Assembly (NCBI GenBank): GCA_002269645.1
Contig: NIVC01000272.1
Location: 1-64,000, forward strand
Direction: 5' to 3'
Source: Macrostomum lignano
Lineage: Eukaryota
DNA: 64,000 nucleotides
Shown: positions 50 to 34,400 of the stretch, in pieces
Numbering within the stretch: the stretch's first letter is position 1
Layout: every line of letters starts with the position of its first letter
Notes under the pieces: model-generated
The model's input: the letters and a program-made list of their open reading frames with translations, nothing else
Databases searched by the model: none
What the model was told of the DNA's origin: nothing
Program-made: the position numbers and the translations under genes

Positions 50-2581
50 ATGTCGGCATCGTCATCATCGAACTTAGTTGACAAAGTTGTCCGAATAAAA
101 TTTCACGTGACTCAACGACGAAGTTACAGTTGATCCGAGAATTCGAAGATTATAACTTGTTTGATAAGTCAATCTACCAATCGATTTCATGATATATACA
201 AAGAAAAAAAGACCATCATTGTGTTTTTGAGGGTAAGTTTTTAGTATATTTTATATTATACATGTATTTTTAGGCAGTTGTTATTGTTATGGTGACCATA
301 TAAACAAAAAATGTTTTTTGTAGGCCTATAGTCAACACATTAAACAGTTACTATCTAAACTAGGTAACGAAATTGTGAGTGTGTATATAATATGAGGCTA
401 TAAATACAGTAATTAAAAATAAAGAAATGAGTTTTTAATTATTGATAGGGGGCCTACAATGTGACTAGGTGACTGGTGGTTCATATAATTGACTTTAACT
501 AGCTTAAATTTTGAACCTAACTTTAAATGTTTATGAAAATTCTTCCAACATAAAAATAGCCATTTTGCTTCTAATTAAAAATAGATATTTTTTTAAACCA
601 AGTGTAAAGTTGCCAACTTTTTGGCCAACTTAAGTTGCCAACTTAAAAAAAAACTATTAGAATTTTATTTTGGCATACACTTATTATAATCCAGACTATA
701 GGGTCATATACTTTGTAGTAAATGATAAAAGCTGCCTTTTTATTGAACCAACCTCTACTTTGTTCTTTTTCAAAGCTTTCAACTATCTGCTATACCCCTA
801 GATATCTATAATAAGCTTATTAGTATTATGTATAATTATGATAGCCTAGTAATATTCTTATACTATTGGCAATATTGATAATACTTTTTGGGTATTAAAT
901 ATCAGAAGCCTTATAAGTCTATACTTTTAAAAGTATTAGACTTTATTAACTTCTAATACAATTTTTCAATTTTCCAATAGTTTAACAGTCCTATACCATT
1001 CCCATTGAACCCAGTTGGAATAAGTGGACAAATAGTCAAAGAACTAAGCAATTTAATTTGTTTAGTGATAGCTGCCTATACATTTTTTGAAAATGTTATA
1101 TGCATCTTAATATATACTTGGTTTAAACAACTTAACCTATGTAGCTATGGTCAATGCTTAGAAAAATGATAGAAGATTGCATCTAAATAATAAAATTACC
1201 TTCTCTGATATTTTTGTACTAAAGAAAATGATTTACCTTTTTTATATTTAGAAAACTAAAGAAAGCTAATCCTCATCAAACACTTTAGCACCCACAGTGC
1301 TTTGCTGCCAAAGAGTACATGGAGGACTTGGCAACAATACCTGATGGTGTCCTGCAGCAAGCCAACGTTCAACTTGTTGCGGTTGTGCCCAGCATGCCTG
1401 AGCTGCTGTCGGTATGTCTGATTTGTGTTGCTTTTCATGAGTTTCACCATTGCTGTTCTTGTCTTTATTTATCAAATTGCTTAAATATTTTTCCTAGCTG
1501 AGAGCAATTCAACACTTTGCAGGTGTTCAAAGAGGAGACTGGCTTTAGGCATGCACTTTACTGCGACCCCAGTGCTAACATCTACAGAAAAATTGGCTTT
1601 AAATGCGGAGTTGTGCCGCATGACCAATGTGAGTTATTGAGAACTGCATGATAACACTTGAAAAAGGACCGCATATTTGAAATAGCTCTCTAATCCTCTC
1701 CCAGACCCTCAGTTGCTGGGCCACTCACCCTCCCAGATGCTTAGTTGCTGGCCAGCCACTCTCTCACTCTCTCAGATCCTCAGTTGCTGGCCAGCCACTC
1801 TCTCACTCTCTCAGATCCTCAGTTGCTGGCCAGCCACTTTCTCACTCTCTCAAATCCTCAGTTGCTGGCTAGCCACTCTCTCACTCTCTCAGATCCTCAA
1901 GTTTCTGGCCAGCCACTCTCTCATTCTCTCAGATCCTCAGTTGCTGGCTAGCCACTCTCTCACTCTCTCAAATCCTCAGTTGCTGGCTAGCCACTCTCTT
2001 ACTCTCTCAGATCCTCAGTTTCTGGCCAGCCACTCTCTCACTCTCCAGATCCTCGTTGCTGGCCAGCCACTCTCTCAATCTCTCAGATCCTCAGTTGCTG
2101 GCCAGCCACTCTCTCACTCTCTCAGATCCTCAAGTTGCTGGCCAGCCACTCTCTCACTCTCTCAGATCCTCAGTTGCTGGCCAGCCACTCTCTCACTCTC
2201 TCAGATCCTCAGTTGCTGGCCAGCCACTCTCTCACTCTCTCAGATCCTCAAGTTGCTGGGCCGGCCATCCAGATCCTCACTCTCAGCAACAGACCCGCCG
2301 CCCCTGAACGCCCAGCAGACCCGGTCAACAACAAGCACGTGAAGTCCAGCTGGATGTTAGGCGTCCTGCGCAGCACCTACCGCACGGCCGTGCTTTACCG
2401 GGACTTCAACGCCGACATGCTGGTGAACGGCGGCTGCCTGGTGCTGGGCCGGGCCGGCAGCTGCACTGCAGCCACCTGGACAACGGCATGTTCGACCAGA
2501 TGCCCATCAACAGCCTGCTGGAGCGAGTCTGCGGAGTCACCATGAGCTTCCCCAAGGACCGCGCGCGTGCTGCACCTCTGA
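50..2581 (+). CDS. PRXL2C: Peroxiredoxin-like 2C / AAED1 (AhpC-TSA_2 family) homolog, 4 exons, frameshifted as assembled
   Basis: Exons: ~50-232 (ends KEKKTIIVFLR|gtaagt), 1289-1411 (HPQCFAAKEYMEDLATIP), 1523-1628 (FKEETGFRHALYCDP), ~2288-2581 (NNKHVKSSW, GGCLVLG, DQMPINSLL, RVLHL*). These match recalled AAED1 segments RHFLCYICKEY, GGTLILGPG and HKPINSVL. Exon 1 has an in-frame TGA (131-133) and exon 4 needs several 1-nt shifts, so the start is uncertain. Confidence 0.8.
1707..2286 (+). repeat. 39-bp minisatellite (cagttgctggccagccactctctcactctctcagatcct), ~14 copies, fills intron 3 of PRXL2C
   Basis: Direct tandem periodicity; 13-aa period in the ORF track. Confidence 0.95.
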
Positions 2582-3344
2582 TTCACCGAGGCTGTCATCA
2601 ATTTTTCAGGTCTGCTGCGTTTATTGACAAATTTGTATTGCGGTAAGCAAAAAGTCAAGTCCTAGTTAGTCAGCAAGATTTCCAGTATTCTCATCATTTG
2701 TGTTTCTCTGATAGATTTTAAATACAAGTGCAATGAAGTATTGTTTTGTTCGGCAGTAAATAAAATATCTTTAATTGCATTAAGCTCTTTGATTCATTTC
2801 TCTCATCTCTCATCTCTTCTCTCCCGTCTCTCCTCTCATCTTCTCTTACCGTATTTTGTGTCTGCTCTCTTCTCCTTTATTCCCTCGCCTCGCCTGTTCC
2901 CTCCCTCTCCTCCCGTTCTGGAGAGCACTTTTGCCAGACGCGGTCTCTCACTAATGGGCAGCTGCAGCTAAATGCACTTCATGCAGCGATAGGACAAATG
3001 TGCCATACTGGGCTCTGGTTCATTTCTAAGATATCGAATGCAATGTCCTGCTTCATTATTGTCACTAGAATAGTGGTGCACTTGAATTCCACTCACTCTA
3101 GTACGTGCAAATACTTGCTACTGTAAGTTTAGGTCTGTTTCATGTTTATACAGTAATGGTTTTAATAAAGATGCATGATGTAAAGAATTTCAAACTGAAA
3201 ACGAAGACTATAGAGCTTTTCAGTTTTATTAACTTCCTGTAGGAAAAGATCTGGCCATGCAGCCAAGCTACACGCGCGTCAGAATGTGAAATTAAATGAA
3301 ATCATACTATGCATGCTTTCATTGCATTTTGAGCTGGCTAAAGG

Positions 3345-3778
3345 TCACGGGTGGCTCTTCGCAGCCAGAGGCGGTGGGAAGCCTATAAATGTTCTTTTCA
3401 GGCCGTGGAATAAAGGCGCTTGAGTTTCCTGCTGGCGTAACTCCACCTTCAGATCGGATTTCTCCCGGACTATTGAACACCTTCCGGGTTCAGTCGGGGC
3501 CTGACGCTGTCGCTGGTCGGTGCATTCGCTTTCAGCCGGCTGCAGTGGCTGCTGCTGACTGTCCAGTCTGAGGACTGCCATTCTTTTCGTCAGCTCGTCA
3601 ACCTGAGCCGCTTCGAACTGCAGTCGAAATCGATCAAACTGTACCGATCTGCTCGTTTAAATTTCAATAAACTAAATAGCCTCGATCAGCTCCTTACCTG
3701 ACGCCGACGGACTTCGGTAGAATCCTCCACGAGATGTCCACCGTGCCGCAGCTGATTCGCCCACAGTCTAGCAGTGAG
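3345..3778 (-). CDS. Putative spliced coding exons of an unidentified gene
   Basis: Exon ~3778-3698 (ag|gtaagg donor) joins in phase to exon 3567-3345 (cctcag acceptor, ends TGA). A further gtaagt donor lies near 3888. No recognisable homology. Confidence 0.3.
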
Positions 3779-4887
3779 CTGCGGTGCGTACGATATTCAA
3801 AGGATTTATCACTATTCAAAAGAGGCTTTAAGGTCATCCAGCTACACGTTTTGCTGGGGATACAGGCTGGAAGTGTGGCGAGACTTACACAGAGCTGGTA
3901 ACAGTGCGAATTTCGCGGTGGCAACGGCGGCTGCATGGTGTCTGACATTCTGACACGGCGAGAACTGTTGAACTCGGGGCCTTAATTGCATAATAAATTA
4001 TGCACCAGCTGTAGATAATGGCTCACTTCCACGTGCCGATGCCAACTGCGTTTCGTGATAGACTTTGCAGCACTACATGTATGTACTGCTTCAAACGCAA
4101 TTGATAATTACGAGTATATGATTAACTAATTCAAGCCATAGACAGCTGGACCAAATGAATGTATAGAGTAGTGCATTTTATCGGATCCCGTTCATGTACA
4201 TTTTTGAGCTCCATGGTGGGTCATATTTAGATAGAAATGGGTCTGGGTCTTTATCGAGTGACTGTTCTTGGTCATGACCACGAGCTACATGTATAACTTA
4301 TAGTTTCATTGTACAGTAGTCAAGCCGACAGTCGATCCACAGCCGTTGTCACACACGTTTCGCGCTGAGCAGCTCACCCGCTAGCTCAACTTGAGCAGAA
4401 AACGGAACACTTTAGAGGTAGTGAAAGGACGAAGGAATTAGATTATGAGCACCTGGTGCGACGCCTTCGGCGAAATCATCTCTTAGTGCGATATGGATCC
4501 AGGATTTTTCCGGGAGTCATTCACCCTCTAATTTTTTCGAACCCCTAGACTTCCCTGAATCTGGATTCAAGCCCTGCTAATGTATATGGCCGGCCACAAG
4601 GTAGAAGTTGATTGCATCTCTCTATTGCAATTTTTGCGCCAGGCACGATTTTCTAAACAAAGCTTCCTAAGCCCTGCGTGTCTACTCGTAGAGTCTTCGC
4701 GTGACAGCCCATGTCTCGTAAATACTTTAAAGCCAGGTTCGGACACTTACACTTACTCGAAAGCGTGGATCACAATTAAGCCGCAGACCACTCTTTTATC
4801 AGAAAAGGCCACGACAAAAAAACTTTAGAAATTAAAAATTAATAAATCAGTCAACTACAGCCTTGATCAAAGTGACTGCCCCCGCTT

Positions 4888-5136
4888 TCACTGGTGGTGC
4901 CTCTTGTCACTCTCTCCTTGATGTACTCTATTGAAGTCTTCTAATCTTGTTCCTTTGAGGACTTGTTTCACTTTGGGGAAGAGGTCCAACTCTACAAGCT
5001 GTCTTTGGCTTTGGCTCACTGGAAACGCCTTGTGCGATGTGGCAGTGTAGTGATGTAGCAACCAGCCATTGTTCTCCCATTGTTCGCAATATGTAAAATA
5101 GATGCTTTGACTTTAACTTTGAATTTGACGATCTTT
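4888..5136 (-). mobile_element. Degenerate mariner (Tc1/mariner) transposase remnant
   Basis: Minus frame reads KDRQIQS*, then WENNGWLLHHYTATSHKAFPVSQ and LFPKVKQVLKGTRLEDF. These resemble mariner KARQ..SKVK, WLLHHDNAPAH and LFPKLK..LKG.RF, with stops and internal deletions. Imperfect inverted repeat tagttgaytgatttatt at ~4841-4857 and ~5222-5238. Confidence 0.7.
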
Positions 5137-6148
5137 GACATTGTCCCGCTTCCAATTTGAAATAAGCATACACAGCAAGCAGGTCAATGACACTGTTTGA
5201 TCTATATGATACTATGATAGATAGTTGATTGATTTATTTAATTTCTGTTCTAATGTACAAAAATTAAATCGGTTTTTAGTAGTTCTCGCCTTGAGTCCAG
5301 CAAAAGTAAAAAAATAATTAAGCAAACAATATGCCAGCTACAGATAATTATGAATTAATAACTTTAGTCACGTGACAGCAGACATGGCACACAGCTGCTG
5401 GATAGCGGTATATATAAGTCCAGAAGCAAGTTAAGTTAGTATGCAGTCAGTTGCGGATTCGATCTGCTCAATTAAAAGCCACCTCTTCGACCAGTGTCTC
5501 CAGTGAATATTCGAGCAGTTCAAATTCCGACACTGATACTCTCAACAGATTAAGCAGAAAAAACAGGCCAGATAGCTGTGTATAACAGATTTTCTATTTT
5601 TAATGTACAAACAAAAGTGTTTTCGAAATAAACTCATTTGTAAATAAATAAATATACGCATAGCCCGATGAAAACGGTAACCCAGGACAAGAAGCCTCTC
5701 AGAGTAGTTGCAGGTAACACAGGTAAAATAGGAAAGAACTGACTCTAGCCAGACGACGAGATGTCACGGAAGAAAGTCGCCAGAAAGTCATCGAAGAGAA
5801 GAATGACTCTGTTTAGTCTACTTGAGTAAGTAGAATGTTAAGCGCTAACAATGACTCTTTCGTGACTCAACAGTACAATCGTTTTGAGTCCTTAAAACAG
5901 TCGCCCCAGAGTGCGTTGTTTGCAATGAATTCTTGAACGATTCTTGTCCCAGTAACGTTTTCAACGCATAGGAGAAAAATTACAAATATACTATTAATAG
6001 ATGTTCTATATAGAAAGGTAACGCGCATTTCTGCTCTCTCCTATCTGCCTGTCTGTCTGAAAACAATAATTATGTCCATGGGAGATTTGCTGTTTATTTG
6101 GTGCATGCTTAGACACAGGTGGGGGCCATCCAGCTGGTGATTGACAGC

Positions 6149-8828
6149 TCAGGTGGCCCAGGCCTCCAGCTCGCGCATCTCGTCCTCCTCGGACTTCGCT
6201 CCGGCCGGCTTTTTAGCGGCTGCGGCTTCCGGCTGGCCGCGCGGGGCGCTCGGCAGCTCCGGGACGCTGGTGCCGCCAACGTCAAGAAGCTGCTTGTCCA
6301 GGTCCTCCTGCTCCAGCTCCTCCAGCTCCGCCAGCAGGTCGTCCTCGTCGACATCGTGACCGAAGCCGGCGGGACTGCTAATGGCGTCGCTGATCTCCTG
6401 GGCGATCTCCTGCTGCTCGTGGATCTCGTCCATCACGTCGTGCACCTGCGGGAGCGGCAAAGAGCCGGGCTGCGATCTGGATCTGCCAACTGAGGGTCTG
6501 GATCTGCGAGCTGAGGGTCTGGATCTGCCAGCTGAGGGTCGGGATCTGCCAGCTGAGGGTCTGGATCTGCCAGCTGGGGGTTGGATCTGCTAGCTGAGGA
6601 TTTGGAACTGCTAGCTGAGGGTCTGGATCTGCCAGCTGGGGGTCTGTCTGGATCTGCAAGCTGAGGGTCTGTCTGGATCTGCAAGCTGATAGTCTGGATC
6701 TGCCAGCTGAGGGTCTGTCTGGATCTGCAAGCTGAGGGTCTGGATCTGCTAGCTGAGGGTCTGTCTGGATCTGCAAGCTGAGAGTCTGGATCTGCCAGCT
6801 GAGGGTCTGTCTGGATCTGCAAGCTGAGGGTCTGGATCTGCTAGCTGAGGGTCTGGATCTGCCAGCTGGGGGTTTGGATCTGCTAGCTGAGGGTCTGGAT
6901 CTGCCAACTGAGAGTCTGGATCTGCAAGCTGAGGATTTGGATCTGCTAGCTGAGGGTCTGGATCTGCCAGCTGAGGGTCTGGATCTGCCAGCTGAGGGTC
7001 TGGATCTGCCAACTGAGAGTCTGGATCTGCAAGCTGAGGATTTGGATCTGCTAGCTGAGGGTCTGGATCTGCCAGCTGAGGGTCTGGATCTGCTCCCGAA
7101 TGCTGACAGCATTGAATCCTGGCACCAGTATGCAAGTTTATCCTCTAACTTGAACAGAAAACACACCTGATCGATATTGAGATCCTGGTGAGCAGATTTA
7201 AGTGACTTGGCGGCCACTTGCATGGCCTTGAGCACTTCGGTGTTGGTGCTGGCGTTCTCTAGGGCCTCACGCTGGAATTCGATGGTGGTCAGGGTGCCGT
7301 CGATCTGGGTGAGCTGCTTCTCATACCGCTTCTTCCTGGCCAGAGCTTGCAGGGCCGCTGTGGTGTTGAGACAAGTTTTTGGCGGATGGTCAGTTTAGTG
7401 TGAGAGAGAGGTTGTGAAAAGCATGTCTAGGTCAAGTTTTCTGCATAAGCCCCAAATTAATGCAGCCATGCATAGAATCAAACCAAGAGATATTGCTCAA
7501 GGTCAATCATTATTTAAGAGACTAGGATATAAAATGCAATCATTATTAGTATTAGCTAAAAACAGCCTAAATTTATTTATATGTTACTTTATATTTTTTG
7601 CTTTGATTTCATTCTCTTTCCACAAGGTCATTTTTTGTACTATAAGAATTTTTATAATATATTAAAAATTAAAGTGTTTGTTTTTATATATATAGTAAGC
7701 CTATGAAAGCATTTCTATAGTCAAAAATACAATAGCATGGGACCTTTAAAATAAAATGCATTTGAGGCCAATATTAAAGTCAAGCTTAACCAAGTTAAGT
7801 TAATCTCTGCTTATTTTTTATTTTGATTCTATATATAATACTAGTCTTTAGATAACTAGATACCCTAGGCTTAATGTTAAATTATGCAAGCTAAGAAAGT
7901 ATGTATATCTGATTCTAAGTTAGTTAATTTTTTAAATATTAATTTGTAATAAAAAATTAGCTACCAATGGCAATGCATATTAAATGATTAATTTACTCAG
8001 TTATCTAATATTTTTAAACTTAATAAATAAAGAGAACTATTTAGTTGGAGTTAAATTGAATAGATAATAAGTAGAACAGAAGGCCTAAATGAATAAAATA
8101 TGTAAGACAACTAGGAAGGGCTTGAATATAGATAATTAAAAAGGACAAAGGCAAAGCATGCAACTAAGGAAACAGATAAAATTGAATAGCCTATTATTGA
8201 TTGGTTTATGAGTATAAACAATAATATTATAAAACCTAATATAATATAATAAATACTCCAAACTAAATATTAGATTTCAAGAGTCAATCAAAAAGCAGCA
8301 AAAGAATGATAAGAAAAACAATTTTGAACTGACAGGGGGAGAGAAAACAGAAAGTCAAAACAAAAAATGCATATAAAAAATCAATAGATTATGATGGTCA
8401 TTTTTGGTATAAAAAAGATAGGCCTAACTAACCATCTAAATTAAATTCTAACTAATATATATTTTTATTTTCTTGAAATAACAAGACAAAACATTCATAT
8501 GAAAAATAAAAATAAAAAATAAATTTACAATAGATTGATCATGTATTTCGCCTAGCCTATACCATGATTGCAGAGCAGTCTGAAATGGAGGTCTTATTAG
8601 GCCTATTACTAAGGCAAAGCATAAGCTCAAGGAAAATAAACAATAGCAAATCCACATACCTCGTTTGTTCTTTGTTCCATGTTTCTTTGCTTGCGTAATT
8701 TCTTCGTGAATTTTCTTTTCCAAAAACTGCGACTTTTTATTTAACATTTCTTCTGTGTTTCGCAACCTCTGGATCGCCTCTTGTGGAGACTCAGACTTCT
8801 CCTTCTTCTTTCCGAATAGAAAAGACAT
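6149..8828 (-). CDS. CHMP4: Charged multivesicular body protein 4 (ESCRT-III Snf7/Shrub), 218 aa
   Basis: Exons 8828-8660, 7357-7167 and 6445-6149 join in frame through GT-AG introns. Motifs: MSFLFGKKK, EAIQRLRNTEEML, KKRYEKQLTQIDGTLTTIEFQREALENA, DEDDLLAELEELEQE, ELEAWAT*. Confidence 0.97.
6470..7095. repeat. 21-bp minisatellite (gctgagggtctggatctgcca) in CHMP4 intron 2
   Basis: Tandem periodicity with 25-bp variants. Confidence 0.95.
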
Positions 8829-9969
8829 TGTTCTCAACAATAGCTAAATTAACAAAAAGGACAACAATTCTGGATGACACAAAACAGCTTAACGAGGCTG
8901 GACAACGCCTTGTTTTGCTTTTTGCTTTACTTACAATAAACTCTACAATATAGCAATGCAATCTAAAATAGCAGTTAACATAGCAATTTCGAATTAGTGC
9001 GTTATATTCATCAGCTAGCTTAACAAAGTTTTTTCCTTTCCTGTCAATATAAGAATAAATAATTTTTGAAAAGTGGCAAAAACTATACTTATTTGACAGT
9101 TTTTTAGTTTTTTCTTTCTGAGTACCTGTTTTTTCATCCCTGAATATGTTGTTCAGGCTCTAAAAGTCTTTTAGCCGGATACATTAACTTTTAACTATTT
9201 CGTGACTGAACTGAGCAATTTTAGACAAACTATAGAGTAGGACGCTATTATCTGGGAATCCTACAGATTTTGCAGATTTTCCTGCAGATTTTCCCAACGA
9301 ATTCCACAACGGACTTGCTATTCCACAATATTCTAATTCTATAATAATTACATCGCTAAATTGACTGCTGTGGCGGCCCAATCAGCACGCAGCCAGCGAT
9401 TGCGAGTACATCTGCACTGAAACCCCCTGCCCGCCAAGCTGGGGGTGGGTGTACTCGGACAGACAGTCAATATGCTTAGTCGGGGGGGGGGGGGGTTCGT
9501 GCCACCTTTTTGGCGCGCCTCCCCATGTGATCGCGTGCTTATTTATACCTGACGCGTCAAGCTAATAAACTTTTACTTTTCCTGCTTGCAACTTACTTTA
9601 TTTTTCCGCAAACTGCACATGTACTTGTTGATTTTGTGCGTGTAGCTCGTAGATGTACGAGTTCGAATTTTGAGTACTGATCTTGGAGATCAGAAAATCA
9701 GTAATTGCAAGTTGCTCTAAAATATATCCATCCCAGTTGTCTATTTGCGTGTTTGATTTCTTATATAAAACGCATTTATCCCTATGCAGACCCTGAGTGC
9801 AAAAAAATATTTTTCCGCGTTTAGAAATAACAATGTCGCGCCAAAATTCGATGAAAATTTACTCGGATTCGATCAATTTTATATAGCAAACAGCGTCATT
9901 GATTTATATCAGACCTTGGGTTTGTCTAGAAAAAATTATCAACAGGTTTTCTTGTAAGTTTGGTACGAA

Positions 9970-11630
9970 TCAAAATAACGAGCGCATTATCCCCTCAATT
10001 CTTCTGCGACAAACCAAGGCATTCGGCTCTGGAACGACCGAACGAGACAGCTCAATGATGGCAAGAGCAACAACTATGCCCATTGAGGTTGCAGCGAATG
10101 CGCCGAAGTACACTTTGTCAGTGCCGGTGACGACGGCGGCCCAGTCGTTGGTCGTTTTCGGTTGGACAGTCATCCGGCTGGGTGATTCCGCTGGGTGCTG
10201 CTGCGACTTCGGACTCAGCGTAACAGCTACTGAGCCCTTTGCACGCGGGCTGCCTTTCTGCACAAGCCGGTTGAGAAAGAGAGCGCGGATTAGCTGGTTG
10301 CTGACGCGAGCGCTGCTGTGCTGCTTAAAGTGGCAGCTGATGACGAATGCGTTGCAGAGGACGTTCAGAATCGTCATGAGCACGGCCAAACTGAAGTATA
10401 GGGCTGCAATTACATGTTAATGATTACCGTTAGTTCCTGATGGGAAAAATTTAATAACGCACACGTGACTCACCGATGAGCGGCACGGACTCGCTCTGCG
10501 TAGGCGTGTAGTTGCCAGCCAGCTGCAGGAACACGCACATGGACAGCACGATGGTGATGCTGAAGGAGACTCGCTCGCCGCACTCGAGTGGCATGCGGAA
10601 TGCGAGCGCAGAGATGACGAGGAGAAGGATGCTGGGCAGCATCAGGTTCACCACGTAGAATGTCGGCATCCTCTGAAAAAAATTGTTTCCCTGCGCTCAA
10701 TCGGTGAATTTGAGTCCCCACTTACACCCGATGAGGAAATCTTACAGTGGACGATATTTTCAGTGCCGCAGCTTCAAATGTGATTTCTCCTCGCCAGACC
10801 AGCTTCGCATCCGTGATGCAGAACTCGTTGCTCTTGGAAATCTCGTCAGTTAGCGTCAGGTTTAGAAAGAAGTCCTTTGTGCGCAAACTTGATCGCACTG
10901 CTGGGCTATAATGAGCTGCCAGTTTGGACCTCGCAGGTCGGAACATCGTACGGGAAGCCGAACATGTGCATGCGGCGCTTCGATGTCACGACTAGCTGGG
11001 TGCCGCGAACCACCCAGCTTGAACTTTGCAGCACCACGATGACTCGCTCGTCGGAGACTCGCTTGTAGCTTAATCTGTAGTGGGAAAAAGTCTTTTATAG
11101 TATCCTATGCTTTAGTATATATATTAACAGAGAGTATGATTTCTCGAAAGTTTCAAACACATCATAAAATGAGACATCGGGCTGCCAAAGCAGGTCTGCT
11201 GGGAGGAAAATCATGTCAGTGCCATCCAGACTGGAGTTGAATCGACCCAGCCAGGAAAGGCGGCTGTTCTTCCAATACTTAAATGGTACGTGAATTATTC
11301 AAAGGGGTAATTGATTGACAAAAATCAGTATACTCGTAAAAGAACACGATCTCCTGAGCTGCAGAGTCCTAAAATGATTGCGATGCAGTTTTAATTCAGA
11401 GACCAACAGACACAGGCTCCGCGAGGACCTGGTATTGACCTTCAACCGAAAGTCCTAATCAGTCTTACCACTTTAATACGGCTGCTCAGGTGCACGAAAC
11501 CTGACCGTATTGGCTGTCCCATTGTCCGGCGGAGGCCGGATGGCGCTGTTGTACTCTGAGGCGAGCTTCAGCGTTGCCACCACCTCGGCGTCGGGCGATG
11601 CGGGCGAAGCAGAGGCGGCCGCATGGCTCC
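9970..11630 (-). pseudogene. Nicotinic acetylcholine receptor-like Cys-loop channel subunit, disrupted as assembled
   Basis: Segments: YNSAIRPPPDNGT (~11550), YWKNSRLSW..LWQPDVSFYD (11277-11159), MFGFPYDVPTC (exon from 11074), TM1-TM2 RMPTFYVVNLMLPS..GERVSFSITIVLSMCVF (10672-10474), TM3-TM4 (10403-9970). In-frame TAG at 10908-10906, first loop Cys is Arg, at least two frameshifts. Possible signal-peptide exon 12148-12068. Confidence 0.75.
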
Positions 11631-12750
11631 ATGGCTCCTTCGATTGGTTGGACTCAGAAAGGGAATAGATTGCCGCAGGCTTTTAAACGGCAATGCGGAA
11701 ATATTTGCAGTTGAGGTGAGCATCCCCAATGAGACTTTTCTGGCAGCAACTGTGGCATCGAATTTCTCGACAAGAATCCTTGTTCTGCTCTCAGTGTTGT
11801 TTGCATAGCGCGAACGGGTCTGTTTGCTGCTCTCTCATGCTTGTCGAGCTATGCAAAGTCTCGCGGACGGGTCGCTTTCTTAGCGTGTATCGCCCTTGTC
11901 CTCTTGACAGGAGAAGCCATTCTAATCCAAAAAGTGCGACTGATATTCAGAGGGAGACAGCACTGTAAAAATATCCTAATGACACTACTGGAAGAAGTAA
12001 GGCTTGAATGAAACTGTGCAGATTGAGAGTATGGCAGACGGTTTAAATGCATACAAACCGCATTTACTTTTCCGTGGTAGCTCAACTCCGTGAATACGAG
12101 TAAGATTGTGCAGGACAGAAAGAAACTCAAGCTGAGAAGTTTTGGCATACAAAGCAACCCAGCCCTAAAAATAAGTGCTGTGCAAGAGTTGAAAACAAGT
12201 TCTAAAGATGCGCGCCGGCCTGACGCTCCCAACTCTGCCTCTCGTGTTTATTTTCAGGCAGGATCTTTTTTAAACTAAAAGAAGAATAGCCCAGCCCTCT
12301 GTCCCCACTAAAGCTTGGCCGACGATAAAGCATCGCCTTTTTTAACGAGTTTTTTCCGAGCTCTTCAGAGCTCTAGGGGCTCTGTTTGCTGTGACTACCT
12401 ACGCAGGCACACTGTAGATAGCCTGCACTGCTCGGGCAATGGTGCTGCGCCAGGAGAGAGGCGAGCAGATTTGTCAGTAGGCATTGTGTAGCGAGCGCTG
12501 GGCCCGGCCCCACAAATGAGAGGGAAGGGTGTTGTGCTGCTTCGATGCATTCGGAGCCCAAGTGCGCATGGCAGCTGCAAAAACGCGTAAACACAAACAG
12601 ACAAAAACTGCTTTTGACAACTGGTACAGTATATAATAAGGCTCATTTGAGCACTCGGCCCTGACAATCGGCTGCTTGGACAGGACAAACTCAACTCTAC
12701 TGACATCTCAATTTTCTAATAGAAGAAGACTAACCAACTATAAACTTGAA

Positions 12751-13246
12751 ATGTCTTCTCAGAAAACAAAGAAGTCTGTCAAAGATCTCGACATGAACCG
12801 GCGAGATCCGCAGGACGTGAACATCCACCTGCAGGTGAGTGAATCGAGTCAAGCACGAGAATGATTAGAAATCCGAGGAGTGCAATAAATCACTGCCGAT
12901 TTGCTCACACAAGGTGGAGTTCGATGACATCCTGGCCGAGCCCGAGGGCGCCTACTCAATCAACTGCGTCTGGCGCTGCTCATACCGCTGCTACGAGTGC
13001 TGGAAGAACTGCTGGTACCGGACCCTCACTCTGCTCTGCGGCTGCTGCATCGCCGCCATGTGGGGCTGCCACTTCGCCGAGTTGGCCTTCTGCCACGTCT
13101 GGTGCTGCACGCCGTACCTGAAGAGCTACATCATGGACATCAAGATCATTCGCGAGATGAACGCGGCCTGTTACGACGCCTGCCTTGGCACCTGTTGCTC
13201 AGCCTGCGGCAACTGTTTCAGTAGAATCCGAGTGCAGCAGAACTGA
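12751..13246 (+). CDS. CAV: Caveolin-like protein, copy A (138 aa)
   Basis: Exons 12751-12834 and 12914-13246, GT-AG intron. RDPQDVNIHLQVEFDDILAEPEG matches the caveolin signature (FEDVIAEP). Confidence 0.93.
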
Positions 13247-13751
13247 TATTGGCGATCTCGTGAACAGTTTAACCAGTTCCAGCTGTCCCTCTTCTGTTAT
13301 GGTGGGCAGTGAAAGCTCGAGACTGAAGGCTAACCTGTGTATAGCTGGCATCCTAAAATACCTACTAACACTTTTCTATTACTTACCAGGGGTACTGTAC
13401 AACAAGAAACTACGAACGTATCATTTCTACGAATTTAACCCTGTCTAGCGAGAAATTGTGTACAAAACAATTTCAATTTGTTTTTTATAAATATAGCTGG
13501 AACTATAGGCGATACTAACCGAATTATTATTTATATTATATTACTTAAACTTATCCGAGGCAAGGTGAAATACATTGACTTTTTTGGGTGTATTAACCCG
13601 TGATCGCATCTTGCTGAAAACTTTCTGCAACTGCAACAGTATCGCTTCAAGAGCTCTCGTTTAGAAGGATGAATAAAACTTATTGATAGATTGAATTAAA
13701 ATACTAAGATTTTATTAAGCGACTTGTAAATAACTCGTGGATCAAGGTATA

Positions 13752-14462
13752 AATGCACATTGCCTCGACCCGGATCATCTGCAATGCACACTGCCTCAAC
13801 CCGGATCATCTGCAATGCACACTGCCCCAACTCGAGTCATCTGCAATGCACACTGCTCCAACCCGGATCATCTGCAATGCACACTGCCTCAACCCGGATC
13901 ATCTGCAATGCACACTGCCTCAACCCGGATCATCTACAATGCACACTGCTCCAACCCGGATCATCTGCAATGCACACTGCCCCAACCCGGATCATCTGCA
14001 ATGCACACTACCCCAACCCGGATCATCTGCAATGCACACTGCCTCAACCCGGATCATCTGCAATGCACACTGCTCCAACCCGGATCATCTGCAATGCACA
14101 CTGCCCCAACCCGGATCATCTGCAATGCACACTGCCTCAACCCGGATCATCTGCAATGCACACTGCTCCAACCCGGATCATCTGCAATGCACACTGCTCC
14201 AACCCGGATCATCTGCAATGCACACTGCCTCAACCCGGATCATCTGCAATGCACACTGCCCCAACCCGGATCATCTGCAATGCACACTGCCTCAACCCGG
14301 ATCATCTGCAATGCACACTGCTCCAACCCGGATCATCTGCAATGCACACTGCCCCAACCCGAATCATCTGCGATGCACACTGCCCCAACCCGGATCATCT
14401 GCAATGCACACTGTCCCAACCCCAATCATCTGCAATGCACACTGCCCCAACCCGAATCATCT
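13752..14462. repeat. 31-bp minisatellite (cacactgcctcaacccggatcatctgcaatg) between the caveolin genes
   Basis: About 23 tandem copies. Confidence 0.95.
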
Positions 14463-15844: not shown

Positions 15845-16376
15845 TCTGCTTCTTCATCAGTCTGCTTTTTCACCAATCTGCTTCTTCATTAATCTGCTTC
15901 TTCATCAATCTGCTTCTTCATTAATCTGCTTCTTCATTAATCTGCTTCTTCATTAATCTGCTTCTTCATCAATCTGCTTCTTAATTATTCTGCTTCTTCA
16001 TTAATCTGCTTCTTCATCAATCTGATTCTTCATTAATCTGCTTCTTCATTAATCTGCTTCTTCATCAATCTGCTTCTTCATCAATCTGCTTCTTTATCAA
16101 TCTGCTTCTTCATTAATATGCTTCTTCATCAATCTGCTTATTCATCAATCTGCTTCTTTATCAATCTGCTTTTTCACCAGTCTGTTTCTTTACCAATCTG
16201 CTTCTTCACCAGTCTGCTTCCTTATCAGTCTGCTTCTCATCAATCTGCCTCTTCATCAATCTGCTTCTTCACCAATCTGCTTCTTCACCAGTCTGCTTCT
16301 TCACCAATCTGCTTCTTCACCAGTCTGCTTCTTCACTAATCTGCTTCTTCACCAGTCTGCTGCTTCTTCATCAGTC
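15845..16376. repeat. ~16-bp minisatellite (aatctgcttcttcatt/c)
   Basis: Tandem periodicity. Confidence 0.92.
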
Positions 16377-16781
16377 TTGTACGGGCAGAGTCTATGCCAT
16401 GCTTTCTTTACCTCGCATATGTATCAAATCTCGTTTTGTTTGACTAAAGACTCATTAAACTGTCAAAAGCGACACTGGTTTTATTGATCAAGGAGGGACT
16501 CTTCAAAGGTGCAAAGGCGCTCTGGTTTCCAATTAAGACATTTATAAAGCACTGCATTCCAAAATCACCAATTAAGCCAAGCAAGAACGCAATTGCAACA
16601 GATTGCAAATCTGGTGCTATCGGCTGCGCACTAAGAATGAATTAAGTCCAAGTGTAATTGCTTTGATAAGGAAAGTAGTCAACTAAAGGCTATAAAGCAT
16701 TAGAGGTTGTTCGACTGGTTAATTTTATTTCTGAATAATGTATAGCTATAAAGACAGCCTGTTGTCAGGAGTGTCCGGCAT

Positions 16782-17207: not shown

Positions 17208-17734
17208 CCTGTTTGAGCGGATTTCCAGGCTTTTCAGGGAGGCAGGTGAGGAGCAGGAGAGATTCCAAGGCGGCTGTGTCCAGTCCCGACAGTTCAACAA
17301 TATATTATGCCAGACAAGCGAGGGAAGAGTTGCCATTGGTAACAAACTGCCGAGAGGGGTATGCAGGCTGTACGCCAAATGTACATTTGGACTGATGGGG
17401 GAGAGGGGAGGGACAGAGAATGCAGAGTACGTACTGCAGTTTTCACGCACTCTGGTGTCGAGTGGCCTGCGCGCACTGGTCGGTCCAGTAGGGGGGGTAG
17501 AATGAGCTGCAGTCTCATGGGAAGAGAATTTTTTCTCCCAAGAGAGAATCAAATCGATTTCCAAAGCACATCGCAATGCACTGCAATACATGTATTTTAA
17601 CAAATGGAAAATTCCACAAAGCGACGTGGCTAGATCGTGTCGCCATCATGAGTCACTGAACTGGGATTTTTTTATTGCATGCGTTTGTGCAAAATATTAC
17701 ATGCACTTTTAATCAACTTCGGCCCGACCACAGA

Positions 17735-18445
17735 CTACAGAAATGAATTTATTCCCCACATAGGCCTGGCCATAAACTACGGAAACGAATTTATTCCCCA
17801 CATGGACCCGGCCATAGACTACAGAAACGAATTTATTCCCCACATAGTCCCGGCCATAGACTACAGAAACGAATTTATTCCCCACATAGTCCCGGCCATA
17901 GACTACAGAAACGAATTTATTCCCCACATAGTCCCGGCCATAGACTACAGAAACGAATTTATTCCCCACATAGGCCCGGCCATGGACTACAGAAACGAAT
18001 TTATTCCCCACATAGGCCCGGCCATAGACTACAGAAACGAATTTATTCCCCACATAGTCCCGGCCATAGACTACAGAAACGAATTTATTCCCCACATAGT
18101 CCCGGCCATAGACTACAGAAACGAATTTATTCCCCACATAGGCCCGGCCATAGACTACAGAAACGAATTTATTCCCCACATAGTCCCGGCCATAGACTAC
18201 AGAAACGAATTTATTCCCCACATAGTCCCGGCCATAGACTACAGAAACGAATTTATTCCCCACATAGGCCCGGCCATAGACTACAGAAACGAATTTATTC
18301 CCCACATAGGCCCGGCCATAGACTACAGAAACGAATTTATTCCCCACATAGTCCCGGCCATAGACTACAGAAACGAATTTATTCCCCACATAGGCCCGGC
18401 CATAGACTACAGAAATGAATTTATTCCCCACATAGACCTGTGCAT
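17735..18445. repeat. 42-bp minisatellite (cccggccatagactacagaaacgaatttattccccacatagt)
   Basis: About 17 near-identical copies; 14-aa period in the ORF track. Confidence 0.96.
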
Positions 18446-18947
18446 AGATTACAGAAAACAAATGTAATCTTTCTTTGGAATTGAATTCAATCGAAGTTCT
18501 TGTACGGTTTAATTTAGAATTCAAATTTGTTTAAAATTCAGGGCGAAATGGTTTATTGCATAACTAATGTGCCAGTATATATTAGCATTGTTCAAGCGAC
18601 CTTTGTGCCTGATGAGCAGCAAAGACTAGTCTGCATAAGGCATCATCTTCAATATCTCTCGTAGAATCAATCTGGTTGGCTCGGAAGCAGCAACCGCACC
18701 GGAATGTTAACACATCGGGGACCTCCCTGAGACCCGGCGAGTTCAATGATCCCCGATCATTGCCAAATAAATAACAAGGGCACTCGCCAGCCAAGACCGA
18801 TTTAGGATTGAGAAATCCAGTCAAAACTAGCAATACAAATTGATTTAAAATTGCCAGTTCGGTAGCGCAGCTCGGTGTCAATATATTTAGGCTAGCAGAA
18901 ATGCTCAGGCTCGAGTAACGGTCGATCATCAAGAGGCAATTCGCACT

Positions 18948-21900
18948 TCACCTGCCCCTGCCACCGCCGCCTTTCCGCTTGCCGCCCTTCCGGTTCGTCA
19001 GCTTGTTCCGCTCGCGAGTTATGCGCGCCTTCACAATCTGCTCCACGCTTTTGCGCTCCGACTGCTGCTGCCCACCTTTCTTTCCTGGGCGGCCGCCTGG
19101 CGCCGCCGCTGCTGCTGCCGCCGCGGCCGCTGTAGGACCGTGCCGCTTACGCTGCAGACCCAGGACGCGCATGCCGCCACGGCCACCGCCGCCTCCCCGA
19201 CCTTCTCCGTCGCTGCCGGCGCCGTCATCGTCAGCGCCGTCCTCGCCGCCGCCTCCTAGCGCCTCCGCATCGCCGCCGCCGATATCGGGGTTCCGCTTGC
19301 GCCACTTGGCGTAGCGGTCGGTCTTGTAGGAGGCCGGCACCAGCTGGCCGCTCTCCGTCCGCACCATCAGCCGCTTGGCCGCCGACGGGCCGCCGCCGGC
19401 CGCCGAATCTGCCGACACGAACTTCTTCCGCTTTCGGTCCCAGATCCGACCGCCGGCGCCCGGCGCCCGTCCGCCGCGGCGCATCTGGTCGGTCTCATCA
19501 GCCAGGATGTCCATACTGTGCCGCTGCAGGTCCTGCGCCAAGCCGCGCTCCGTCGCCGCCGTGGCCTCGTCGCGGGTGTACGGCATGAAGAAGCCGCCGG
19601 CGCCGCTGGCTTTGATGTCGCCGCTGTCGGCGCCGTCTGCGTTGGATCCGGTTGCGACCGCCGCCGCCTCCCGTTTGCCTCCGCCACGCAGTGCGGCATC
19701 AAGCCAGCCGGCCGGCCGCTTCTGAGTCTTGGCCTGCAGATACAAAAATGCGATCAATACTACTCAAAACAGAAAGTAAGTAGTGTAGAAAAGATTGGAA
19801 ATACTGATAAACACCGCGGCCCTCACCTTTTCAATGACTCGACGATTCTTTTGTCGGAATTTTTGCATCACCTCGGCAACAGCGGCCGGTGCGTTCTTCG
19901 TCTCGAACACCGTGGCCCGGGCTCGGTAAGCTCTGCGGGGCGGGCTCTGCTTGGTTAATAGTGCCGGACACTCACTCTGACACTGACGGACACTCACCCA
20001 GACACTGGCCGGACACTCGCCATGACACTGACGGACACTAACCCAGACACTGGCCGGACACTCACCCAGACACTGGCCGGACACTCACCCAGACACTGGC
20101 CGGAAACTCACCCAGACACTGGCCGGACACTAACCCAGACACTGGCCGGACACTAACCCAGACACTGGCCGGACACTCACCCAGACACTGGCCGGAAACT
20201 CACCCAGACACTGGCCGGACACTCACCCCGACACCGTTCTGAAAGCCCGCAGCTCACCTGATCTGCTTAAGCACATCATCCTTGGCGCTGGTTAGCTCCG
20301 CAAACATCGGGTGCGGCTGCAGGTCGAGCTGGCCGGTCCGTCGGGCCTCCTTGCACTTGGCCACCGCCTGCCGGCTGGCGCCCGGCCTTGACCGGACATA
20401 GTGCTCCATGGCGCGCTTGGCGCAATCCAGCTGGGCGCGCAAATCGGCGCTGATGTCGTGTCGATGCCGGCACCAATCAGCGAATTCTTCCACGGCGGCG
20501 GCGGGCACGCAGCCGACCAGGTCGCCGGGTTCGTCCGGCTGAATCGGCGGTTCGCCCGGCGCCGCGCGGAGGTAGCGAAGGCGCCTGGCGCCGAGGAACA
20601 ACTCAAGGTCGAACAGGTAGGCCAGCTCGTCTGGCGCCAGCAGCGACACGGCGCGGCCTGGCCGGCCGGCTCGAGCAACCCGGCCAACCCGGTGGACGAA
20701 GAGCTTCTCCCTGGGCGGGAAGTGAAAATTCACGACGTTGTTGAGGCGCGGCAGGTCGAGGCCGCGGGCGGCCAGGTCGGTGGTGACAAGGACGTGCCGC
20801 TCGCCGCACCGGAAGTTGGCAGCGTGAATCCGTCGGGCCGCCGGGTCCAGGGAGGAGTACAGGTAGGTCACCGAGATGCTGGCGTCCTGGGATAGCACCT
20901 GGGGGGTGCGGGGTGTTGAGCTGGTGCTTGAGCACTTTTATCATAGGCAAATGTGAGACGAAATTGATCAATAAAAAGCCTGAGAGATCATTGCTAATTG
21001 CCAGCACATTAAAAATCCCAGATCGCGAACCTGATACAGCCACTCCACGTGGTGCTTAGTGGCCACGAACACAATGGTGAGCTCCTGGCCCTTCAGCGCC
21101 GTGTGCAGCAGGTGCAGCAGCACCGGCAGTTTGTCTTCGTCGCGGCACAGAAGGAAGCTGGCGGTCAGCTGGTCGGACAGCTTGGCGTCCAGGTCCAGAC
21201 GGACCAGCAGGGGGTCGGACAGGCCGGCCCTGGCGAACTCGGCCACCGACTGCGGCAGGGTGGCGCTGAACAGCAGCGTCTGGCGCTGGGTTGGCAGCCG
21301 GCTGAGCAGCAGCTGCAGCTGCTCCTGGAAGCCCAGCTCGAATAGGCGGTCGCATTCGTCCAGCACCAGGATCTCCACCTTGCTCAGCCTGCGGTCGGGC
21401 GGGGGCGGGATTTGAGTTGGGACTTGCAGTGGGATTCCTACCTTAGGGATTGGGATTCTTTCCTTAGGGATTGGGATTCTTACCTTAGGGATTGGGATTC
21501 TTTCCTTAGGGATTGGGATTCTTACTTTAGGGATTGGGATTCTTACCTTAAGGATTGGGATTCTTACCTTAGGGATTGGGATTCTCACCATAAGAATTGG
21601 GATTCTTACCATAGGGATTGGGATTCTTACAATAGGGATTGGGATTCTTACCTTAGGGATTGGGATTCTTACCTTAGGGATAGGGATTCTCACCATAAGA
21701 ATTGGGATTCTTACCATAGGGATTAGGATTCTACAATAGGGATTAGGATTCTTAACTTAGGGATTAGGATTCTACAATAGGGATTGGGATTCTCCCCTTA
21801 GAGATTGGGATTCTTACCTTAGGGATTGGGATTCTTACCAGAGGAGTTGGGATTCCTAAATTACTTTAGACATAAACAAAACCTGAGCAGGTCTCACTTG

Positions 21901-30614: not shown

Positions 30615-30970
30615 GAAGTCAGTGAAGGGATGATTGCAGGGTCAGTGAAGGGATGATTGAAGGGTCAGTGAAGTGATGATTGAAGGGTCAGTGAAGTGAT
30701 GATTGCAGGGTCAGTGAAGGGATGATTGAATGGTCAGTGAAGTGATGATTGCAGGGTCAGTGAAGGGATGATTGCAGGGTCAGTGAAGGGATGATTGAAG
30801 GGTCAGTGAAGTGATGATTGAAGGGTCAGTGAAGTGATGATTGAAGGGTCAGTGAAGTGATGATTGCAGGGTCAGTGAAGTGATGATTGAAGGGTCAGTG
30901 AAGTGATGATTGCAGGGTCAGTGAAGGGATGATTGAAGGGTCAGTGAAGTGATGATTGAAGGTCAGTGAA
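30615..30970. repeat. 23-bp minisatellite (agggtcagtgaagtgatgattga)
   Basis: About 15 copies. Confidence 0.93.
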
Positions 30971-31107
30971 TGCACCGATGGGGTCAGTGCAGGGAGAGAA
31001 ACAGCTGACTGTAACACACTGGAGAAAGGCTATTACAGATTGCACTATTGTGCCGCATTGAAATTTGCTCCAAGCAAAGTTCTCCCCGGAGGCATCAGGC
31101 CAGGCTT

Positions 31108-31434
31108 TCACTTGTCCTTCTTGTTCTGCTTCCGGCCCTGCTGCTTGCTGCCGGTTTCAGCCTCGCCAGTGGCCGCAGCGGGCCGCACCGGCTGCCAGTG
31201 CAGCTGACTACGCCGGTACATGGGCCAGGGCGGCAGGGTGAGCAGGGCGGACAGGGCAAAGCCGGCGGCTAGGATGAGCACAGTCTGCGAGAACTGCTGG
31301 CAGATGTAGCCCCAGGCTAACCCAGCCACGCCAAATATTGCCAGTACAAACTGGAAGGTGCGCTCGGCCCTGCGCTGGCCCTCGAAGTCCATGTGGGTGG
31401 GGATGCGGCTGGTCAGGTCAGTGAGAAACTTCAT
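31108..31434 (-). CDS. SPCS1: Signal peptidase complex subunit 1 (SPC12), 108 aa, coding region intronless
   Basis: MDFEGQRRAE, GYICQQFSQTV and LPPWPMYRR are SPC12 motifs. Confidence 0.95.
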   Translation of the reverse strand: MKFLTDLTSRIPTHMDFEGQRRAERTFQFVLAIFGVAGLAWGYICQQFSQTVLILAAGFALSALLTLPPWPMYRRSQLHWQPVRPAAATGEAETGSKQQGRKQNKKDK

Positions 31435-34400
31435 TGTTGAGGCTTGGTGAGGGGACGCTCAGCGCTGCAATATTGGATGCCACATGGTAACAAGCATGAA
31501 GTGCGCCAAGTGGTTTGGACCTCAAAGAACTCGCATATACATAGCACAAGACTAGGCTGAACTGCATATTAAACCCTTATAAACTATTTTGCCTCCCTCT
31601 AAGGCACCAAGTATGCCTAGCAATGAAAGTCAAAAGGCTAATTATCTAGTATATTAAAAACATAAAGGTTTTGTCACATTGTCAAAAGGTATTAACTATT
31701 TTTATTAGGATTATATATAAATATTAATTTATTTATAGAATTTTCTAAAAAGACAATTTTTGTGTCAATTATATTCTAGTTTTTAAGTCCAAAAATAATT
31801 AGTTATCAATATCTATTTATCTATTTCAAAAATTTCTATATTTATAAATATATATATATTTCAATACAATAATACCCATTGATGGCATACTTTATTATCT
31901 TTATTAAATTCCTTTGCAAAATGCTTAGCATAAAAGTTTGTCATTAAAAATGCTTTATAATTTAGGCCTAGCATATAATAAAAAACCAAGATTTCTTCAT
32001 GAAACATTGTCTTTATAATAACCATTTCTAATTCTTTATATATAACTAAGAAAGGAAATTTTGTTTTTAAAGGAATATTGTCAATAAAAATTACTTACTC
32101 CAATATTAAACATTTGATAAAACTCTATGGCATTCTTATACTACCTTTAGGAATAAATAACTTGATCTTAAAAATATAAGATAATTAATCAAGCCATATC
32201 TAAAAAACATGAGGATTCCACATATATGGACATATAAAATATGGAGGTTTTAGATAGGGAGATGCTTTAATGGGGATTGATTTTTTATAAACTTAATAGA
32301 GACATGCATCTATTAAAAATTAAGTATATAAATTTCTAGACCTTGGGGATAGGGTAGATGACTAAGAGGTCAAGAATTGGACCATGAGAAATAAAGGATT
32401 TTAAGATAGAGAAATACTTTATATAGATTAATTTTATACATCTAAACTTTAGCAAATGGATTGGGATTTGTTAAAAATTATGTAGCCTTATATAAAATAT
32501 ATAAATGTTTAGACCTTTAAGAATATAAGATAAAAGGCTAGCTTAGAACATAAATGACTTTTTAGAATATTACTCACTATGTTATTTTTCACTATACCTT
32601 ATTGTACCATGGTTATAGATCTTTAATTTGTTATAGTTAAGCCTGAACTTATGCTATTTATAGATATTTTTATACTATAGCTAGCTTTTTAAGCTGTCTT
32701 TTTACTAGCTTGCAACTTTTACAAATTAACCAGGTGCAAAACCTATATTCTATACTACTATTACTACAATATAGTATACTTTTATATACTTTTAGCTATT
32801 TTTTATTCCTTTTAAAGTTTTAAAAAAAAGTTTTTAAAAAGAAAATTGGAAATATTATATACACCTAAGGTTTAGGAAGTACTAACAGATAGTAAAATAT
32901 AAAACAAAATTATACATATAAATAAATACAATTACAAAACGGCCATAGATTATGATGATATTAATTAAGGCCTAGTAAAAATTGTTTTACTAATCTAATC
33001 ATCAAAAGGACTAAAATTGTCTATATAATACCAAACAGTCTAAGTTTTTATTAGAGAAATTTAATTTGAGAGCAAAAAAACACTTAAGTAGGGCTTATTA
33101 TTAAGAGATATACTATTTACTTTACTAGGCCTAAGAAACAAATTTAAATTTTCTTTTAAAAAATATCTTCAGAAAGTTCAATGTAACGGTTCAGTGCTAG
33201 GCTATGCCTATAGAGACAAAAGTCTCACAAATGCAATAATTTTACACGCCTAAATTTAATCATAAAACACAAATACTAGACTGCAAACACTAGTCCTATT
33301 ACCAATAAAAAAGAAAATGACTTGTCTCATTGCTAATTTGCCTCAATTTTGGCAAAAGAAACTCTAGTATTGCCTATCAGGGGCAAATTATTTAAAAAAA
33401 TCTATTTTCTGATTACTAGGCCTAGCTAGACACAGACTCGAGGCCTCCAGCTAGATATCAAAATGGAAAAAGTAGAATAGTTAGCTAGGCCTAGCTATCC
33501 CCTATGCTGATATACTAAACTAAGCCTGTAAAAACTAAAAAATTGAAATCCGAAAATGGATAATTGTATATTTGGCCAGAACTGAAAATAACCTTTGTCT
33601 TCCGGGCATCAAACAAACCCATCGATCCAACCCGCCCGTCTATAGTTAGCAAGCATACCCGAATTTGGGATTTTGTTAAATTCGTAGAACGTGTTATAAT
33701 TCAAATGTGGTTTTTTGCTAGCAAATTAAAACTAAACATTGCTTTTTCTATTATAACTACCTTGAATTTTTTGTCTAATGTAAATAAAAAAATAAAAACT
33801 AAAAAATTGGTTTACTTTCACTCTGAAATCTATTTTTATTATTCTACTCTTTGAGCTTTCGATATTTATAAAACATATATTTAAAATTCTGAAGTCGTCT
33901 GGAATTCTTTCGCTTTTTGGTATTAAATGCACTCATTGATTAATTATTAGTTTTTTTTCAACAATCTTAAAAGCCCGTCTTTTAATTAAAAAGATGTCAT
34001 TTCATTTTGGTTTTAATCCAAATCGCTTTGAAACTTCAACTGTTTGTTCATTGTTTTATATTCAGCTGCAAGAATTATCACCTGTTATAGTTATAGCCAG
34101 AAGCCAGACCCAGCCAGATCCACAATGTATGATTTTACTTGCTTAAAATAGCTTGGACCCTGTCGGATTCGAAACTAGTTAAAATTAACCAAATTTTGCA
34201 TCCATAATCTTTTAGTTTTTATGTACTACATTTTACCATATTGTTTTTTGATAAATCCATTCCAGAATTGGCCCATTTGTACCTATAATATCATTCAATA
34301 TCATATCAATCATTTTTCAATTTTTCCAGTAGGTCTACTTTTATTCATGCACTAGTGATTTTTTGAATCTATGGTCCTAGAGAACAAAATCGTTTTTTTA

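Follow-up and report, generated by a model that had tools for sequence, protein, structure and literature searches.

The first 64 kb of Macrostomum lignano contig NIVC01000272.1 (NCBI GCA_002269645.1, Mlig_3_7 assembly, NIVC00000000), referred to here as the window, carries three AT-rich blocks that are nearly devoid of CpG dinucleotides, each lying at the 5' end of a gene: PRXL2C, CHMP4 and SPCS1. These structures are listed below, with CpG content given as the observed/expected ratio (o/e) and GC3 denoting GC content at third codon positions.

50–232, plus strand: PRXL2C (AAED1-like) exon 1, starting at the ATG at position 50; about 35% GC, CpGs kept
233–1288, plus strand: block 1, PRXL2C intron 1 (GTAAGT at 233, ...TTTAG at 1288); GC 0.266, 1 CpG, o/e 0.05
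1289–2270, plus strand: continuation of the CpG-poor zone through PRXL2C exons 2–3 and introns 2–3, including a 39-bp minisatellite (array 1724–2267)
6149–6445, minus strand: CHMP4 exon 3; CpG o/e 1.01
6446–7166, minus strand: CHMP4 intron 2, a minisatellite; CpG o/e 0.13
7167–7357, minus strand: CHMP4 exon 2; GC 0.57, CpG o/e 0.66
7358–8659, minus strand: block 2, CHMP4 intron 1; 1302 bp, GC 0.268, 2 CpGs, o/e 0.09 (nominal block 7390–8655: GC 0.262, 1 CpG, o/e 0.05)
8660–8828, minus strand: CHMP4 exon 1; GC 0.38, 7 CpGs, o/e 1.21, GC3 0.46
31108–31434, minus strand: the single coding exon of SPCS1 (108 aa; Pfam SPC12), the exact protein being annotated on two M. lignano contigs, one of them NIVC01000272.1 with coordinates identical to those given here
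31540–33540, minus strand: block 3, 2 kb of AT-rich, CpG-poor DNA immediately 5' to the SPCS1 coding exon; GC 0.257, 4 CpGs, o/e 0.12
33550–33900, unstranded: a CpG-bearing AT-rich patch; 10 CpGs, o/e 1.32

The limits of blocks 1 and 2 are defined by gene models. The N-terminus of M. lignano protein P0122, MSASSSSNLVDKVV, matches the ATG at 50, the frame reading ...KEKKTIIVFLR stops at the GT at 233, and exon 2 begins at 1289 and reads HPQCFAAKEYMEDL. The window copy of PRXL2C (50–232 and approximately 2290–2560) matches P0122 only with three or more frame changes, and its annotated product, P0124, has 141 aa; either long-read indel errors or a decaying homeolog could account for these changes. 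A hand-built three-exon model of CHMP4 encodes 218 aa that match P0001, an annotated M. lignano protein, with 100% identity. At SPCS1, reading of the sequence gives candidate splice acceptors at about 31563 and 31465 and candidate donors in the 33550–33900 patch at about 33659 (CGG/GTATGC) and 33580 (AAG/GTTATT). Block 3 is probably a 5'-untranslated region (5'-UTR) intron or, because many M. lignano genes are trans-spliced, it may be an outron; the patch is a candidate for SPCS1 exon 1 and its promoter, possibly shared with a divergent calcyphosin-like gene.

A first-pass annotation of this DNA had counted one, one and four CpGs in blocks 1, 2 and 3, and our recount gives identical numbers, where base composition predicts 19, 22 and 33 (Poisson tails of 2×10−7, 1×10−8 and 4×10−10, respectively). 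The stretch of about 1.4 kb without CpG claimed for block 3 corresponds to a 1408-bp run at 31532–32940, and the few residual CpG sites are at 368, 7383, 8549, 32940, 33187, 33247 and 33439. The flanking patches contain CpGs as described, with 11 at 1–190 (o/e 1.87), six at 8680–8860 (o/e 1.07) and ten at 33550–33900, as does the AT-rich segment at 43300–44500 (46 CpGs, o/e 1.17). Elsewhere in the window, every non-repeat AT-rich segment of 200 bp or longer has a CpG o/e of 0.6–1.3, and the remaining unique DNA (37.7 kb, after subtraction of the blocks and minisatellite arrays) has 0.89. Although a low GC content does reduce the number of CpGs to be expected, the pooled o/e of 0.07 in the blocks against 0.98 in AT-rich GC-matched controls refutes chance or generic AT richness as an explanation, and we give it practically no weight. 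The depletion is real, local and 5'-proximal, as had been proposed.

A fourth case was found on a contig unrelated to that of the window (L008, NIVC01000059.1), which was reached through a PRXL2C-like paralog:

L008 4521–7455: fourth block, immediately in front of a GH47 mannosidase gene, 5' to its start codon; 2.9 kb, GC 0.28, 3 CpGs

This independent example agrees with the claim that the blocks start directly after a CpG-bearing exon 1. The M. lignano loci sampled here are those reached through four annotated proteins, and the CpG-free cases number four. Between the GH47 block and a CpG-bearing patch, L008 also carries an inverted repeat (7655–7759 and 8056–8160, 80% identity) in which five of the seven CpGs of the outer arm are TpG or CpA in the arm beside the CpG-free block, with none in the reverse direction; this hints at one-sided CpG decay, the arms being only 80% alike, the copies just two and the changes unpolarised.

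Measured in 250-bp bins starting where exon 1 ends, CpG o/e stays low as far as about +3000 bp in GH47 and about +2000 bp in the other three genes (PRXL2C, CHMP4 and SPCS1), and then returns to 0.6–1.2. The depletion is thus limited to the first 1–3 kb after exon 1 in four of four broadly expressed genes, albeit a small sample. In PRXL2C the bins from +1000 to +2000 have values of 0.28, 0.33, 0.00 and 0.07, with at least 0.71 thereafter, and in CHMP4 the region from exon 2 to exon 3 (6149–7357) forms the 3' end of the depleted domain. Exons within the zone are less depleted than introns, ranging from about 0.3 (the PRXL2C bins that contain exons 2–3) to 0.66 (CHMP4 exon 2), against 0.05–0.13 for the introns.

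AT richness and CpG loss occupy overlapping but distinct domains, because the promoter and exon 1 are AT-rich (GC 0.30–0.38) yet keep their CpGs, whereas in both PRXL2C and CHMP4 the loss passes beyond the AT-rich intron 1 into GC-rich, minisatellite-filled introns 2–3. The coding sequence of CHMP4 (6149–8828, minus strand) shows a steep climb in GC3, from 0.46 in exon 1 to 0.75 and 0.87 in exons 2 and 3, so that its 5' end is AT-rich like the promoter and intron 1. In this genome AT richness characterizes 5' gene ends in its own right, taking in the promoter, exon 1, intron 1 and the GC3 gradient along the coding sequence, and does not result from CpG loss.

M. lignano has three homeologous subgenomes that differ from one another by 1.4–2.4%, and homeologous copies of the region were recovered as L002, L003/L006 and L004 (L003 being NIVC01001427.1). 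Block 2 is kept in L004 and L006, the latter with a 3.4-kb insertion at window position 8254, and block 3 is kept in L002. Because the same blocks recur, likewise CpG-free, in homeologous contigs, they are not an assembly artefact. Block 2 diverges between homeologs by 0.5–3.0%, compared with 0.4–0.9% for the promoter and exon 1, and since it changes as fast as these or faster, most of the block is unconstrained; its divergence is neutral-like rather than that of a conserved element. The comparison for block 3 yields only about 25 differences, with no CpG transitions inside the block. Some redundancy is present in the assembly, L007 (NIVC01005033.1) being 100% identical to the window across 3.9 kb, and L002 (4887–7271) having an N gap with a near-identical copy of the SPCS1 upstream region on either side.

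The homeologs also differ by large insertions. L003 has two, at 10576–13966 (3.4 kb, within CHMP4 intron 1) and 16126–21608 (about 5.2 kb), both with internal minisatellites and a similar open reading frame (ORF) of about 90 aa near one edge, and they are probably members of one non-autonomous element family. L009 has a 7.6-kb insertion upstream of the PRXL2C-like gene (2000–9640), a probable mobile element, part of which (6501–9500) carries a classical deamination signature, with CpG o/e of 0.12–0.47 and TpG/CpA of 1.2–1.4. Minisatellites are very dense in the window (29 arrays, for example at 36322–41269, 48466–49814 and 56028–57369), and CpG o/e is below 0.2 in 16 of the 29, most with high TpG/CpA. 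The arrays constitute a second CpG-poor class, one that does carry a deamination-like signature; an exception is L003 17101–20248, which holds one CpG in each 23-bp unit.

These observations bear on whether the blocks could themselves be very old, decayed repeats or transposon remnants that were methylated as repeats and accumulated by chance in large first introns. The CpG-poor arrays and insertions are what such an origin would predict, and the introns in question do receive insertions. However, all four blocks occupy the same position relative to exon 1 and have no similarity to each other or to other DNA that we fetched; Tandem Repeats Finder (TRF) detects no tandem array in the window blocks or in L008 4521–7455, and no terminal repeats or long ORFs were noticed, although no dedicated search for these was made. 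We consider a repeat origin improbable. As to the blocks being copies of one recent transposon or miniature inverted-repeat transposable element, the best all-against-all BLAST matches among them are 20–45 bp long with E values no stronger than about 0.005, and the fourth block likewise shows no relationship to the others. Neither of the two observations that the first-pass annotation had named as fatal to its proposal, a single inserted transposon or a CpG o/e equal to that of GC-matched DNA, was made. The CpG depletion is neither an artefact nor a repeat, and the blocks match no Rfam family at gathering score; the window as a whole contains no such match and no transfer RNA genes, and no Pfam domains were found in its unassigned ORFs.

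The same annotation had proposed a 5'-restricted domain of germline methylation and deamination, and had specified an excess of TpG/CpA as supporting evidence. The zone of CpG loss beside CpG-bearing first exons is as envisaged, but the excess is missing: TG+CA o/e is 0.84–1.04 in the blocks (0.99 pooled) and 1.06 in controls. Other dinucleotides do differ between blocks and controls, including AG/CT (1.21 versus 0.98), CC/GG (1.37 versus 0.93) and TpA (0.99 versus 0.82), and these differences may leave room either for a broader C-to-T process that also consumed CpA or for selection.

A broader process of this kind would be a window of C-to-T hypermutation just after the transcription start, hitting CpG far more than CpA and creating both the AT richness and the CpG loss; it could reflect transcription-linked or enzyme-driven deamination, or methylation extending to CpA. 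A raised TpA without raised TG/CA is expected if CpA and TpG were also consumed, TpA/ApT is 1.0–1.22, and the zone lies 0.2–2 kb from the start, a location similar to that of mutation windows known near transcription starts. Other observations argue against it. (CpA+TpG)/(ApC+GpT) is 0.99, 1.50 and 1.07 in blocks 1–3 and hence not consistently low, there is no depletion of AGCT, and the promoter and exon 1 have a CpG o/e of at least 1 at the same AT richness. Strand asymmetry in blocks 1–3 is weak and inconsistent, with GC skews of −0.02, −0.08 and +0.04 and AT skews of −0.03, −0.13 and −0.06. We view such a process as decidedly unlikely. Its transcription-linked, strand-asymmetric form predicts that past the start the sense strand has more T than A and more G than C, a pattern that is not seen.

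The three window blocks also share a sequence feature, the palindrome core TAGGCCTA, which is often extended to cTAGGCCTAg. Seven copies are present in the window, where 0.89 are expected in the whole 64 kb, and all seven lie within the three blocks:

321 (321–328): TAGGCCTA copy in block 1
8419 and 8598: TAGGCCTA copies in block 2
31963, 33126, 33417 and 33486: TAGGCCTA copies in block 3

In blocks 1 and 2 the copy nearest the 5' edge sits 54–88 bp in from it, and in block 3 the distance from the nominal 5' edge is about 50 bp. Across the three window blocks (4.3 kb) the inner hexamer AGGCCT is present ten times, compared with about 0.2 predicted from base composition, and it is absent from every other AT-rich segment of the window; the four blocks together hold 11 copies, whereas a first-order Markov model predicts 1.4 and never gave more than six in 2000 simulations. 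Five further copies of TAGGCCTA are clustered at L008 8634–9545, a CpG-poor stretch upstream of the PRXL2C-like gene.

The blocks could be a class of functional sequence in which CpG-free AT-rich first introns serve as a regulatory platform, for example as sites for a factor reading cTAGGCCTAg, through nucleosome exclusion or through intron-mediated enhancement, with CpG kept out by selection, for instance so that the region cannot be methylated. The missing TpG/CpA excess and the coincidence of the block limits with splice sites are, like the palindrome, in keeping with this. Against it, block 2 is mostly unconstrained, any one CpG would be under only very weak selection, the GH47 block was searched for TAGGCCTA and contains none, and a literature search for the motif gave no known factor among the 10 papers listed, all of them unrelated and mostly on bacterial genetics and methods. 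A functional class is accordingly an explanation that we take seriously but think unlikely.

We regard a 5'-restricted footprint of germline methylation in the 5'-proximal zone of constitutive genes as the best reading, because M. lignano keeps both DNMT1 and DNMT3 (PMC11292947, PMC9246332) and has low 5-methylcytosine (5mC), the pattern of which is not known according to reviews (PMC11292947, PMC9246332, PMC10658182); we hold it tentatively, as somewhat short of probable. The reviews consulted report no genomic 5mC map for any free-living flatworm. The blocks would be first introns or 5'-UTR introns of constitutively expressed genes, and CpG-specific hypermutation would have stripped CpG from a zone that begins no more than about 100 bp from where exon 1 ends and continues for 2–3 kb downstream. 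The cause would be germline cytosine methylation by the retained DNMT1 and DNMT3, aimed at the 5'-proximal gene body, while the promoter, exon 1 and the remaining genome stay unmethylated. Both 5mC as the cause and a genome-wide 5'-restricted targeting are what we infer from the pattern of loss.

The behavior of CpGs elsewhere is informative in this regard. In a three-homeolog alignment of 10.8 kb of clean columns, GC-rich DNA shows 0.0131 transitions per CpG site and 0.0094 per non-CpG C/G site; the surviving CpGs are not hypermutable, so that most of the genome behaves like unmethylated DNA. Low global 5mC would fit with a few small zones already emptied of CpG. CHMP4 exon 2, which lies within the zone, contributes two of the 16 CpG transitions on 1.5% of CpG sites, and two of its three substitutions among homeologs are CpG transitions, a weak signal.

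Several points weigh against germline methylation as the cause. A neutral simulation at block GC needs a 15–40-fold CpG rate to reach o/e of 0.05–0.11 and predicts TG/CA of about 1.2, and TpG/CpA is about 1.0 in the blocks as compared to 1.1–1.6 in oyster CHMP4; the blocks also differ from controls in more than CpG, namely in CC/GG, in TpA and in the enrichment of TAGGCCTA. Classical invertebrate gene-body methylation is 3'-weighted, as in oyster CHMP4, rather than limited to intron 1, and intron 1 of Capitella CHMP4 shows no CpG loss. Within M. lignano, GC-rich exons inside the zone retain many CpGs (CHMP4 exon 2 among them), and in two genes whose 5' ends can be seen the feature is absent or ambiguous: the calcyphosin-like gene beside SPCS1, in which CpG is kept over the first 1.5 kb of intron 1, and the PRXL2C-like paralog. 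The cases, moreover, number only four. In a more specific proposal, sparse methylation or another CpG-directed mutator is concentrated, in constitutive genes, on a sharply bounded zone of first-intron size directly after exon 1, with cTAGGCCTAg as a marker close to the 5' edge of the zone; this seems to us doubtful and of little likelihood.

The genes around SPCS1 provide a further context. On the minus strand between 14801 and 33650, SPCS1 is followed by an ANKRA2-like gene, nibrin, DDX54, a nucleoredoxin-like gene and a caveolin gene, with short spacers, and only SPCS1, the first of these, has a CpG-free block. Polycistronic units with trans-splicing have been described in M. lignano, and this array may be one of them.

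The sharply bounded zones of 1–3 kb point to where the sparse methylation of M. lignano may sit, and make the location and purpose of this methylation a question that existing bisulfite or long-read data can answer. If the zones are methylated, they would represent a first-intron-centered pattern in a spiralian, and the low global 5mC would be partly explained, its targets having almost no CpG left. If they are unmethylated, a CpG-specific loss without TpG/CpA excess would itself need explaining, and TAGGCCTA would be the best lead. There may also be a practical aspect, in that M. lignano transgenes use native promoters and first introns of this type may matter for stable expression.

Several known systems resemble the M. 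lignano zones in part. Vertebrate CpG islands share a CpG-bearing promoter and exon 1 patch flanked by CpG-depleted DNA, but in M. lignano the background o/e is 0.89, the depleted zone is short and only downstream, and the 'island' is AT-rich (GC 0.30–0.38). Fungal repeat-induced point mutation (RIP) likewise yields AT-rich DNA with raised TpA/ApT and loss of a C-containing dinucleotide; RIP, however, acts on duplicated DNA and mainly at CpA, whereas the M. lignano blocks are unique, are not depleted of CpA/TpG and occur in an animal. Of the RIP indices, TpA/ApT exceeds 0.89 in all three window blocks (1.22, 1.00 and 1.17), and (CpA+TpG)/(ApC+GpT) falls below 1.03 only in block 1. Introns of C. 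elegans rich in periodic A/T clusters (PATCs) are also long and AT-rich and lie in broadly or germline-expressed genes, but C. elegans is not known to have CpG depletion, and autocorrelation and Fourier power reveal no consistent peak of PATC-type 10-bp A/T periodicity in the blocks relative to controls.

Closer parallels are found in invertebrate gene-body methylation. Oyster CHMP4 (L012) is a housekeeping gene with AT-rich intron stretches of about 2 kb that contain zero CpG beside a CpG-bearing promoter, and it shows that strong gene-body methylation can yield CpG-free AT-rich intron stretches of this size. Its loss is strongest from about 6.5 kb of the 12.7-kb gene into the 3' flank, with TG/CA of 1.1–1.6, whereas in M. 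lignano the loss is confined to the first 2–3 kb and TG/CA is about 1.0. Under the more specific proposal of a bounded zone marked by cTAGGCCTAg, the targeting would differ both from the H3K36-linked, 3'-weighted gene-body methylation of most invertebrates and from the exon-centered 5' pattern of insects. The nearest known pattern, judged by likeness, is nonetheless the 5'-biased gene-body methylation of arthropods (holometabolous insects and Daphnia), in which exons 2–4 are the main targets. There too, CpG loss begins a few hundred bp after the start, covers the first 1–3 kb or so of broadly expressed genes, and spares the promoter and the 3' part; in M. lignano, a flatworm, it is the introns that are emptied while exons keep many CpGs, and there is no accompanying TpG/CpA excess.

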